Of a DNA stretch of 64,000 bases, positions 12,527 to 14,383 are shown one piece after another. Position 1 is the first letter of the stretch. Each line of letters opens with the position of its first letter. Where the stretch lies: the NCBI GenBank assembly GCA_965285935.1, contig OZ260663.1:85064001-85128000 (forward strand), read 5' to 3'. Below the pieces are notes generated by a model, which was not told where the DNA came from, made no database searches, and was given only the letters and a program-made list of their open reading frames with translations. The translations under genes and the position numbers were made by a program. Source of the DNA: Ophelia neglecta (Eukaryota).

Positions 12527-13196
12527 TGTGAAATATGAAGATATCATAAGTAGTATTATTCATTAATTTGTGAACTCAAGTAGTATTATATTTGTTGATG
12601 TTACTGCGGCCTGCGTCGATACCATTTTGTTTGTTGTAAGCAGTTGATAATCATGACGTAGTGACATCGCATTGCTAATAAGGTCAAGGCCATTGCGCAC
12701 ATGGGCAGTAGAGGCGGCAAAAAACGATAATGTTTACCGGAGAATTACAAGTAAATGTAGATTTGAACAAGGATGATAGCTCCATAGAAGGTAAATACAA
12801 GATGTAAAGTAGAGATAAGCAATGTCGACAATGTATAGAGAGTAAAATGTAGTCATGCAACATGCTAAACATAAGTAAAATGTAACTTTATTCGATAATG
12901 ACGGATCTACAAGATTTATTGATACAGGCCTAGCCTACATGTACGTGTATTGAATAGACCGTCTACAAGATGTGCCTGCGTAACTAAGCTGTAAATCGTA
13001 AAATATCCATAGTTTGCCTTAAAATAAGACTATTACATTAGCCTAACCAGTATATTAACAACTCTTTATTGTAATTTATGAACAGATTGTATAGAAATTG
13101 TTTTATTGTTTGATTGTATAGAAATTGTTTTATTAAACTTGCAGTTTTACGTGCTGAAGCCAGAACTCGACTTGCGTTATATGACATGAACTTACA
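12527..13196 (+). repeat. 5' LTR (670 bp)
   Basis: TGTGAAATATG..GAACTTACA; internal 23-bp duplication GATTGTATAGAAATTGTTTTATT; ATTAAA at 13132-13137. Confidence 0.97.
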
Positions 13197-13216
13197 GTAA
13201 AACTTCTTGGTTCGAC

Positions 13217-14383
13217 ATGGCACAGAAATTCTTACCATCAAAAATGACGACAGCAGCTGGAAGAAAAACACGCCCACCCAAAAAAGTAAGAGAAATTATG
13301 GAAGACTCCTTTTGTCAAGCTCTTGATCAAGCCTTACAAGATGTTGTCGATGCAGAGAGAATTATACGAACTGGCATGGCTGGAAAAAGACCCCCCGAAG
13401 CTGTTGATAGAGATTTTTATCATTGGACGGAACTTCGCAATCAAGTAAGAGAACTTTTTGAAGAGTTGCCTGGCTATGTAGGAGCCCAACATGTAGAGCA
13501 GTACAGATGCCTGATTGAGAAAATTTCCCCAATGTTTGAGCAATTACCCAAAGATGTTAGGGCCTATTGCAAGGGGGCTAAGGCCAGTAAGGGAGACCAA
13601 GTAATGCTGTCTGAGCTAAAAAGACAAACAACACAACTTGAAATAGAGATTAACAGAATTCACCAAGAAATCTCCCAAACATTAAGCAGTCTTTCTGTAA
13701 ATCCACCCACAAGTAATGGGGTCATTTCATCAACCCCGAAACCTGGTCCTGAGCATCAAAATGAGCAGCAATGTCCAAGATTCCCAGAAGAACCATCGAT
13801 TATTCCCTCGACTATTCTTGTGACTACCGCGAACCCCACAGAAAATTTGAATACTACTCAATCCATTGACACGGCGGCACAATCATTAGAATCTCATGTA
13901 CCTGTATCCACGCCACCCGAACCGGAAACTTCAGATACTTTGACAAAGCTAGTGGACTTGCTTGAGAGCCGACACAACATAGATAGGCTACCTCACGCTG
14001 AACCTGATATTTTCAAAGGCGATTTGCTGTCTTTCTCCACTTGGTGGAGCGCCTTCGAAACCATGGTTGAATCGAGAGCCCGTACAGACAAAGATAAACT
14101 TTTCTACTTGCACAAGTATACCGGAGGGCATGCTAGAGAAAGTATACAAGGCTTCCTGAATTTATACCACGATCCCACGGCATACCAGCAAGCGAAAAGT
14201 ATAATATTCAACCGATTCGGCGACAAGATAAAGATAGCTGAAGCTTACAGGTCCAGACTAGCTAAATGGTCACGCATAAAGGAGGGCGACGGTACAAGTA
14301 TGCTCAAATACTCAGACTTCCTCTGGCAGTGTTACTCAGCAATGGGAACTCTCACTTACCTGAGCAATCTTAACTCGCAGTAA
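13217..14383 (+). CDS. gag: BEL/Pao gag, N-terminal part (DUF1759-type capsid), ended by an in-frame TAA
   Basis: LPHAEPDIFKGDLLSFSTWWSAFE..KLFYLHKY..AYQQAKSIIFNRFG capsid pattern; same reading frame as the downstream ORF. Confidence 0.9.
   Translation: MAQKFLPSKMTTAAGRKTRPPKKVREIMEDSFCQALDQALQDVVDAERIIRTGMAGKRPPEAVDRDFYHWTELRNQVRELFEELPGYVGAQHVEQYRCLIEKISPMFEQLPKDVRAYCKGAKASKGDQVMLSELKRQTTQLEIEINRIHQEISQTLSSLSVNPPTSNGVISSTPKPGPEHQNEQQCPRFPEEPSIIPSTILVTTANPTENLNTTQSIDTAAQSLESHVPVSTPPEPETSDTLTKLVDLLESRHNIDRLPHAEPDIFKGDLLSFSTWWSAFETMVESRARTDKDKLFYLHKYTGGHARESIQGFLNLYHDPTAYQQAKSIIFNRFGDKIKIAEAYRSRLAKWSRIKEGDGTSMLKYSDFLWQCYSAMGTLTYLSNLNSQ

Follow-up and report, generated by a model that had tools for sequence, protein, structure and literature searches.

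A young BEL/Pao retrotransposon in the genome of Ophelia neglecta carries, in place of a tRNA-type primer-binding site, a short sequence directly after its 5' LTR that is complementary to the LTR's own RNA, and this complementarity is most extensive once a predicted small intron within the LTR is removed. About 30 related families share this layout, pointing to self-priming of reverse transcription, a mechanism not described for the Belpaoviridae. The element lies in a window of 64,000 nucleotides (the whole stretch of DNA analysed; assembly GCA_965285935.1, contig OZ260663.1, positions 85,064,001 to 85,128,000 of the forward strand), and all coordinates refer to this window. We consider it somewhat more likely than not (probability about 0.6) that the element primes as Tf1 does, from a primer completed by splicing. 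Splicing, primer cleavage and priming are inferred from sequence alone.

Structure of the element and its post-LTR complementarity

The element has the following features, with the parts of the LTR named according to the proposed model.

12522-12526 (+): target-site duplication CAAGG, left copy; the right copy is at 19820-19824
12527-13196 (+): 5' LTR, 670 nt, TG...CA
12786-12790 (+): end of the predicted LTR exon 1 (AGAAG), the 5' half of the predicted self-primer, complementary to 13203-13207
12791-13144 (+): predicted spliceosomal-type intron inside the LTR, 354 nt, GTAAAT...TTGCAG, holding a tandem duplication (13087-13134) and ATTAAA (13132-13137)
13143-13150 (+): the 8-mer AGTTTTAC; 13143-13144 is the AG of the predicted 3' splice site and 13145-13150 (TTTTAC) the start of exon 2 and the 3' half of the predicted primer, whose predicted 3' end (cleavage point) lies between 13150 and 13151
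13151-13196 (+): the rest of R plus U5, inferred from the geometry, which would be copied into minus-strand strong-stop DNA
13197-13207 (+): putative primer-binding site GTAAAACTTCT
13217-14383 (+): gag, 388 aa (DUF1759), ending at an in-frame stop at 14381-14383
14396-18862 (+): pol, 1488 aa (Pao peptidase A17, integrase zinc domain, DUF5641), in the same frame as gag
19135-19149 (+): plus-strand primer region before the 3' LTR, a T-run followed by GGGTAGCCC
19150-19819 (+): 3' LTR, in which the same exon end (19409-19413), predicted intron (19414-19767) and exon 2 start (19768) recur

The two LTRs are 100% identical, and profile matches to PF05380 (1e-49), PF18701, PF17921 and PF03564 place the element in BEL/Pao. 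Its best relatives are BEL/Pao polyproteins of fish and molluscs, with about 40% identity. Six near-identical copies are present in the genome, some of which have one uninterrupted 1890-aa frame in place of separate gag and pol. A search with the gag N-terminus found only these six copies, a count that leaves aside the 885 RT candidates of the genome. Contigs from three DNA sequencing runs join position 12528 directly to the right flank, which is the empty site, so the insertion is polymorphic. Together with the identical LTRs and near-identical copies, this indicates that the element is active or was so recently. Length differences between copies (indels of 29 nt and about 47 nt) fall inside the predicted intron. 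Relatives have a similar plus-strand primer region, ...GGGGAGCCA|TG. They also carry a hairpin and a poly(A) signal in the segment equivalent to 13151-13196, where this element has none.

An earlier note, made from the sequence alone, had reported that the eight bases following the LTR, GTAAAACT (13197-13204), are the exact reverse complement of AGTTTTAC within it, with ATTAAA five bases before the A at 13143 and no TGG-type tRNA site. This observation is correct, and all six genomic copies keep both 8-mers. No TGG-type site follows the LTR directly; the nearest TGG starts 11 nt downstream. A site at that position (13208-13225) was considered and rejected, as it has no tRNA-like multi-copy complement in the genome, overlaps the gag ATG, and has no counterpart in relatives. 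The complement of 13197-13213 also has no multi-copy match: apart from the element's own six copies, matches within 2 mismatches number 161, against 385 for the control. There are no tRNAs in the window. As these pattern searches stood in for a comparison with the full host tRNA set (63 of about 44,000 candidates were scored, and the loci retrieved hold only tRNA-Thr(TGT) and tRNA-Arg(TCT)), a tRNA fragment matching 8-11 nt is not strictly excluded for this one element.

Chance complementarity in an A/T-rich LTR was tested with decoys. An 8-mer complement somewhere in 670 nt is not rare, and many windows were read, but a perfect complement of 8 nt or more, anchored at a given position and found anywhere in this LTR, occurs at only 0.7% of 2860 decoy positions inside the element. 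Given this, and the same geometry in about 30 families described below, we regard chance as refuted.

The note had further proposed that 13151-13165 pairs imperfectly with the leader at 13204-13223, covering the gag ATG. This is not supported. The fold of that stretch is no more stable than shuffles (z = +1.55), and two copies carry GC>AT at 13159-13160 with no compensating change.

A predicted intron divides the putative primer

The note read the 8-mer as the first nucleotides of the transcript, starting at 13143, while cautioning that TTGCAG|TTTTAC also resembles a splice acceptor. This interpretation is only partly supported: the apparent lack of a tRNA site and the pairing of post-LTR bases with the LTR's own sequence, the 3' C of the motif facing the first base after the LTR as a self-primer requires, are borne out, but so is the caution. 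The AG at 13143-13144 looks like a 3' splice site, and the post-LTR complementarity continues into a predicted upstream exon end that is followed by GTAAAT (GAAG|GTAAAT, exon end at 12790), which looks like a 5' splice site. Removal of 12791-13144 joins AGAAG to TTTTAC, giving an 11-mer complementary to 13197-13207. The likely primer is therefore this 11-mer, and the transcription start is inferred to lie upstream of 12786.

Of the 46 GT sites in the LTR, this is the only one whose exon end gives 5 matches, and a two-part match of 11 nt was reached by none of about 390 decoys. Joining takes the predicted duplex from -5.9 kcal/mol (8-mer, unspliced) to -11.3 kcal/mol (11-mer), and only the spliced RNA has this duplex in its minimum-energy fold. 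In the window splicing adds only 3 pairs beyond the contiguous 8, which taken alone is weak (46 GT sites x 4^-5, about 0.045). The predicted intron has GT...AG borders with a purine at +3, but the pyrimidine tract before 13143 is modest (58% against a 46% background) and ATTAAA sits only 5 nt before the AG. A search of the genome with a 24-nt pattern spanning the joined exons found no intron-less LTR of this family, though it has only six copies, and a search of sequencing runs found no RNA run holding the element, the three matching runs being DNA contigs that give no start, end or junction.

Stronger support comes from relatives, referred to here by L numbers. In the window and in 9 of 9 usable BEL elements from other assemblies, the bases starting at the first position after the LTR are a perfect complement of an LTR-internal motif, 7-14 nt long and 54-190 nt upstream, with per-element decoy P values from below 0.0004 to 0.028. 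Covariation between the two sites had been named beforehand as a test of self-priming, and the letters do covary: TTTTAC/GTAAAA, TTTTCAC/GTGAAAA, TTCTCAC/GTGAGAA, TTTCAC/GTGAAA, TTTGAC/GTCAAA and TTTTTCCAC/GTGGAAAAA. This excludes one shared host RNA as the partner. The motif follows a YAG, and in each of 8 families with a full LTR one upstream GT site (GTAAAT, GTATGT or GTAATT) extends the match to 10-12 nt once joined to the motif; sites with an intron-side score this good make up 10-21% of GT sites per LTR. Where the exon end differs from the intronic AG (GG in L082, CG in L087), the post-LTR bases match the exon and not the intron.

Among 79 metagenome loci, 22 (about 13 distinct families, about 10 of them beyond those already named) give a two-part match of 11-17 nt with GTR...AG borders, compared with only 2 of 2223 decoy sites, which predicts about 1.5 hits. 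In total the two-part layout, with GTR...YAG junctions, was found in about 20 other BEL/Pao families from other assemblies and metagenomes, while about 11 further families carry the primer contiguously (10-14 nt). Donor sites in relatives include GTAAGT, GTGAGT, GTATGT and GTAAAT, and their pyrimidine tracts are clear. The layout is not universal in BEL/Pao, as seven metagenome loci with defined LTR ends show no such signature, and roughly half of the 79 loci gave no signature or lacked the LTR.

Direct excision is seen twice. The L111 LTR equals the L093 LTR minus 168 nt (GTAAGC...TTTTAG), and the L105 3' LTR equals the L108 LTR minus 536 nt (GTAAGT...TTTCAG), the acceptor in L108 having been fixed by alignment with L105 rather than by automatic choice. 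Both junctions lie exactly at the predicted primer, so the intron is excised in vivo in these relatives. On an RT tree, intron-bearing families are spread throughout and intron-less ones sit beside intron-bearing sisters, two of them with nearly identical RT.

Self-priming from a transcription start at 13143, with no splicing and with the upstream GTAAAT site and the 3 extra matches incidental, remains possible but unlikely. In its favour are the contiguous perfect 8-mer at offset 0, a TATA-like TATAGAAA lying 26 nt upstream of an initiator-like GCAGTT, the contiguous primers of intron-less relatives, and a Logan contig (L089) that starts exactly at AGTTTTAC. However, L089 is linear and also ends exactly at the predicted exon end, and joining its ends gives 12 matches, so that its ends look like branch points of spliced and unspliced forms and are not proof of a start site. 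The continuation of the match across a GT...AG gap in about 20 families, and its fit to the exon in L082 and L087, also count against this reading, as does the weakness of the 8-bp A/U-rich duplex, which is absent from the minimum-energy fold. In intron-less relatives the promoter must lie upstream of the whole primer, and under this reading R would be about 10-20 nt at most. The pairing itself has a sharp 5' limit (10-17 nt), but TATA and initiator motifs upstream of that limit are not consistent across families.

A further possibility, which we consider improbable, is that the pairing is a structural long-range helix closing R-U5, for packaging, dimerisation or translation control, and that the real primer is a tRNA half or another small host RNA that also fits 13197 onwards. 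Retroviruses have U5-leader helices around their primer site, and the motif TTTTCAC may resemble an anticodon loop, that of tRNA-Glu; the comparison with host tRNAs also covered only part of the set. Yet a helix with no priming role has no reason to end exactly at the first base after the LTR, where the LTR end is set by the position of the primer's 3' end, and it does so in nearly all families with a signature; the few exceptions (L125, L126, L130 and L164) sit 2-4 nt after the LTR end. The covariation of the LTR with the post-LTR letters also means that no single conserved host RNA fits, and the pattern searches found no multi-copy genomic complement.

A model for self-priming and its implications

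We propose that transcription starts in the LTR somewhere upstream of 12786, that an intron lying inside R (12791-13144) is spliced out of the 5' copy, that the junction AGAAG|TTTTAC folds back onto 13197-13207, that the RNA is cut after the C at 13150, and that the resulting 3' end is extended through U5, so that minus-strand strong-stop DNA would be joined at its 5' end to ...AGAAGUUUUAC. The analysis establishes the complementarity, its exact abutment to the LTR end, its covariation across families, the GT...AG borders, and exact excision of the homologous intron in two relatives; that this copy is spliced, the cut, the priming itself, the start site, the 12790^13145 junction and the poly(A) site are all inferences. 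Cutting of an RNA:RNA duplex by a BEL/Pao enzyme has never been shown, and a long exon 1 would leave a 5' tail that complicates plus-strand transfer. The model also needs an RNA spliced in its 5' R but not in its 3' R, an asymmetry for which we have no demonstrated basis. In this view the 3' LTR copy must keep its intron for the intron to be inherited, and when it is spliced too an intron-less LTR with a contiguous primer would result; such LTRs exist in nature. The model predicts a poly(A) site shortly after 19768 and a retained intron (19414-19767) in full-length RNA.

More tentatively, and somewhat less likely than not, splicing inside R could be the switch that licenses a BEL/Pao RNA for reverse transcription, such that only RNA spliced in its 5' LTR copy carries the full self-primer and becomes genome, while unspliced RNA serves as messenger. 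Intron-less lineages with a permanently assembled primer would arise whenever the 3' LTR copy does not stay unspliced. This would tie a host nuclear process directly to primer formation in a whole family of reverse-transcribing viruses.

If the self-priming reading holds, self-priming occurs in a third family of LTR retroelements, in animals from fish to molluscs, and a primer written across a splice junction would be a new link between splicing and the start of reverse transcription. It would explain why LTR annotation tools that look for tRNA sites fail on many BEL/Pao elements. It would also give a simple sequence rule for finding the LTR end and the primer in such elements, and predicts intron-less LTR variants as footprints of spliced genomes.

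Comparison with known priming systems

Belpaoviridae are described as tRNA-primed and their replication as poorly understood (PMC8742986), and we found no paper proposing self-priming for them. The gene content, TG...CA LTRs, 5-bp target duplication and polypurine-like tract of the element fit the ICTV (2021) description of the family, but the 18-nt primer site complementary to the 3' end of a host tRNA was not found here. As this feature is descriptive rather than defining, family membership stands. The insect element Achilles has a tRNA-Tyr site (PMC4580426), for which no equivalent was found in this element or in about 30 relatives.

In Copia and plant Copia lineages primed by half-tRNAs the primer-binding site likewise does not start with TGG, but there it matches an internal part of tRNA-Met or tRNA-Ile over about 15 nt (PMC6317226), whereas here no tRNA match was found and the partner is in the LTR. 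In retroviruses with a splice donor inside R (HTLV-1/BLV, foamy viruses) a splice signal also lies inside the LTR-derived leader, but only the donor is in R and splicing makes subgenomic mRNAs; here the predicted donor and acceptor both lie in the LTR, and the junction itself is the sequence that pairs with the primer site. Self-priming has been inferred from sequence alone, from the lack of a tRNA site and complementarity of the LTR to the post-LTR bases, in the plant Tcn1 (Ty3/Gypsy) and TAR (Ty1/Copia; Houba, Osr-1) lineages (PMC6317226), which belong to other families and for which no intron in the primer has been reported.

The closest parallel is with Tf1/Tf2 of fission yeast and the Tf1/sushi group (Ty3/Gypsy, Metaviridae; PMC6317226, PMC5443660). 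There too a tRNA site is lacking, a short stretch of the element's own upstream LTR RNA (11 nt in Tf1; 10-17 nt here) is complementary to the bases next to the 5' LTR, its 3' end faces the last base of U5, and the duplex closes a structured R-U5. The present element is not a member of that group, its pol having Pao-type rather than chromovirus-type domains. In Tf1 the primer is contiguous and is the very 5' end of the mRNA, and the cut and the priming have been shown; here they are inferred, and the putative primer, whose 5' end is not mapped, is split by a GT...AG intron in most families.

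Structure of the element and its LTR-leader complementarity

The window holds a complete LTR retrotransposon, whose coding regions identify it as a BEL/Pao element (Belpaoviridae). The main features are as follows.

12527-13196, 5' LTR, 670 nt, running TG...CA
13217-14383, gag, with a DUF1759 domain
14396-18862, pol, with Pao peptidase A17, an integrase zinc domain and DUF5641
19150-19819, 3' LTR, 670 nt, identical to the 5' LTR at every base

The LTRs are flanked by a 5-bp duplication, CAAGG. The gag and pol genes are in one frame, separated in this copy by a single in-frame stop (14381-14383) that could be a nonsense change or a read-through stop; some other copies have one uninterrupted frame of 1890 aa. 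The genome (762 Mb) has six near-identical copies, besides many other BEL families. DNA contigs of three public runs from one sample (X1, X2 and X3) carry the empty target site, joining the left flank (12400-12528) directly to the right flank (19825 onwards), and also carry LTR ends joined to other flanks. The insertion is therefore polymorphic and recent, and the family has other insertion sites in that individual. About 2 kb on either side of the element (8729-11042 and 21409-22731) is repeated at 89-95% identity with a spacing of about 12.7 kb, and the immediate flanks also resemble each other (...CAAGGTATCACTACGGATT / CAAGGTGACGCTACGGATT), suggesting that the element sits inside a larger duplicated or repeated unit, possibly an older element's repeats.

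The sequence GTAAAACT (13197-13204) follows the final CA of the 5' LTR directly and is the exact reverse complement of AGTTTTAC (13143-13150), which lies 54 nt before the LTR end and five bases after ATTAAA. The observation made in the earlier note is thus correct. A match this long, anchored at a fixed position, occurs at 0.7% of decoy positions. No TGG-type site follows the LTR, and searches of the genome found no multi-copy sequence complementary to 13197-13213 or to the TGG-containing stretch 11 nt downstream. Among the tRNA loci of this genome that were retrieved (L043-L072, on contig C2 around 102.98-103.02 Mb, 21.32 Mb and 119.65-119.69 Mb) are long tandem arrays of tRNA-Thr(TGT) genes, with periods of about 1.5 kb and about 1.2 kb, and of tRNA-Arg(TCT) genes, with a period of about 0.9-1.4 kb. 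The interpretation in the note, self-priming by the element's own RNA, is supported in part: the geometry recurs in relatives, but a second pairing that it proposed, of 13151-13165 with 13204-13223, is not supported, and the primer appears to extend across a predicted splice junction.

Protein searches found no close relative of the element, the best hits being polyproteins of about 40% identity from fish, molluscs and other assemblies. Ten of these loci were retrieved (loci are designated here by L numbers). In every one that holds the LTR, the bases starting at the first position after the LTR are a perfect complement of an LTR-internal motif that is 7-14 nt long and lies 54-190 nt upstream. 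The paired letters covary, with TTTTAC matched by GTAAAA, TTTTCAC by GTGAAAA, TTCTCAC by GTGAGAA and TTTCAC by GTGAAA; later loci added TTTGAC with GTCAAA and TTTTTCCAC with GTGGAAAAA. A single conserved host RNA cannot explain these differences, and a helix without a priming role has no reason to end exactly at the LTR border, because that border is set by the 3' end of the primer. In six of nine families the minimum-energy fold of R-U5 is closed by this duplex, and a hairpin carrying the poly(A) signal usually follows the motif. In one relative, L090, a second copy of TTCTCACG lies in U5, 35 nt before the LTR end, in addition to the one at the predicted acceptor. The sequence preceding the 3' LTR is also conserved across distant families (the window at 19129-19152, and L079-L083, L087, L089, L090, L103 and L111) as a T-run followed by GGGGAGCCA or GGTGGGAG and then TGTAAC, which is unusual for a polypurine tract.

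A predicted intron within the LTR

The LTR-internal motif is always preceded by YAG, often after a pyrimidine run. We asked whether any GT in the LTR has an upstream end that continues the complementarity once it is joined to the motif. In each of eight families exactly one site stands out and extends the match to 10-12 nt. These sites read AG|GTAAAT, AG|GTATGT, AG|GTAATT, GG|GTAATT or CG|GTAAAT, and sites whose intron side fits the donor consensus this well make up only 10-21% of the GT sites per LTR. In two relatives, L082 and L087, where the exon ends in GG and CG, the post-LTR bases match the exon and not the intronic AG. In LTRs of L081, L083, L086, L087 and L125 a recurring ATAAGGCAC / AAAGGCGCAC / AAGGCAGCAC motif sits about 8-12 nt before the exon 1 end, just upstream of the primer's 5' limit, and may represent a promoter element, a poly(A)-like signal or a structure.

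In the window the corresponding site is GAAG|GTAAAT, with the predicted exon ending at 12790. Removal of 12791-13144 gives AGAAG+TTTTAC, which is complementary to all of 13197-13207, a score reached by none of about 390 decoys. The calculated duplex energy goes from -5.9 to -11.3 kcal/mol on splicing, and only the spliced RNA has the duplex in its minimum-energy fold. Copies of the element (loci L004-L006) differ by a 29-nt and an about 47-nt length change and a tandem duplication (13087-13134), noted at 13068 and 13050-13097. All of these lie inside the predicted LTR intron, and the exon parts are unchanged.

To widen the sample, metagenome contigs were scanned with a pol alignment, which gave 79 more loci, and every [C/T]A|GT site upstream of pol was tested. 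Twenty-two loci (about 13 distinct families, about 10 of them new) show a two-part match of 11-17 nt with GTR...AG borders and donors that include GTAAGT and GTGAGT; the longest matches are 17 nt in L152 and 15 nt in L159. Only 2 of 2223 equivalent sites inside coding DNA reach this score, so that about 1.5 hits were expected by chance. About eleven further families have the primer contiguous, 10-14 nt long, at 0-4 nt from the LTR end. Seven loci with defined LTR ends show nothing of the kind, and many of the loci lack the LTR; the layout is therefore widespread but not universal. In a more distant BEL family (L149:56-71 with 498-513; L150:1-11) a 16-nt inverted repeat with a 426-nt loop lies upstream of gag, but does not follow the GT-after-CA rule.

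Intron-less LTRs in related families

Direct evidence for removal of the intron was found in two relatives. The LTR of L111 equals the LTR of L093 with 168 nt (GTAAGC...TTTTAG) missing, and the 3' LTR of L105 equals the LTR of L108 with 536 nt (GTAAGT...TTTCAG) missing. Both junctions are exactly the predicted primer. Such intron-less LTRs are what reverse transcription of an RNA spliced in its 3' LTR copy would leave. Within the L105 contig itself the 5' LTR (L105:1-326) keeps the end of the intron while the 3' LTR (L105:6787-7103) is the exact intron-less form, and the shared 182 nt are only 88% identical; it is a recombinant, a nested pair or an assembly chimera. The Logan contig L089 is linear, beginning at AG|TTTTAC (L089:1-8) and ending at ...AACGAG, the predicted exon 1 end (L089:6950-6959); joining the two gives 12 matches to its own post-LTR bases. 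This is the pattern expected where spliced and unspliced forms branch in an assembly graph, but it is not proof.

On an RT tree the window groups with L082 (support 97/86, on a long branch). Intron-bearing families are spread over the tree, whereas the intron-less ones form one clade of six plus four singletons beside intron-bearing sisters, two of them with almost identical RT. This fits repeated loss.

Proposed self-priming and comparison with other elements

By analogy with Tf1, we propose that RNA starts upstream of 12786 and that the 5' copy of the LTR intron is spliced out, whereupon the junction folds onto 13197-13207. The RNA would then be cut after 13150 and its 3' end extended through U5, and the short strong-stop DNA would transfer to the 3' R. 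Copying of the 3' LTR, which in this view escapes splicing, would restore the intron. Plus-strand synthesis would copy the primer back into the primer site, which would keep the two sequences matched and, in this model, explains the perfect covariation. What the sequences themselves establish is the complementarity and its position against the LTR end, its covariation between families, the GT...AG borders, and the exact loss of the intron from LTRs of two relatives; for the present element everything that concerns RNA, including the start site, splicing, the poly(A) site, cleavage and priming, is inferred. In the window the only poly(A) signal, ATTAAA, lies inside the predicted intron, 5 nt before its AG, and would therefore be lost from spliced 5' copies and kept in unspliced 3' copies.

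Belpaoviridae are described by ICTV as tRNA-primed, with a replication that is poorly understood (PMC8742986), and an insect member has a tRNA-Tyr site (PMC4580426). The two main BEL/Pao surveys do not discuss primer sites, and our literature searches found no paper proposing self-priming for BEL/Pao, although most subscription journals lay outside them and an older report cannot be excluded. Self-priming is established for the Tf1/sushi elements and is predicted for the plant Tcn1 and TAR lineages (PMC6317226; PMC5443660).
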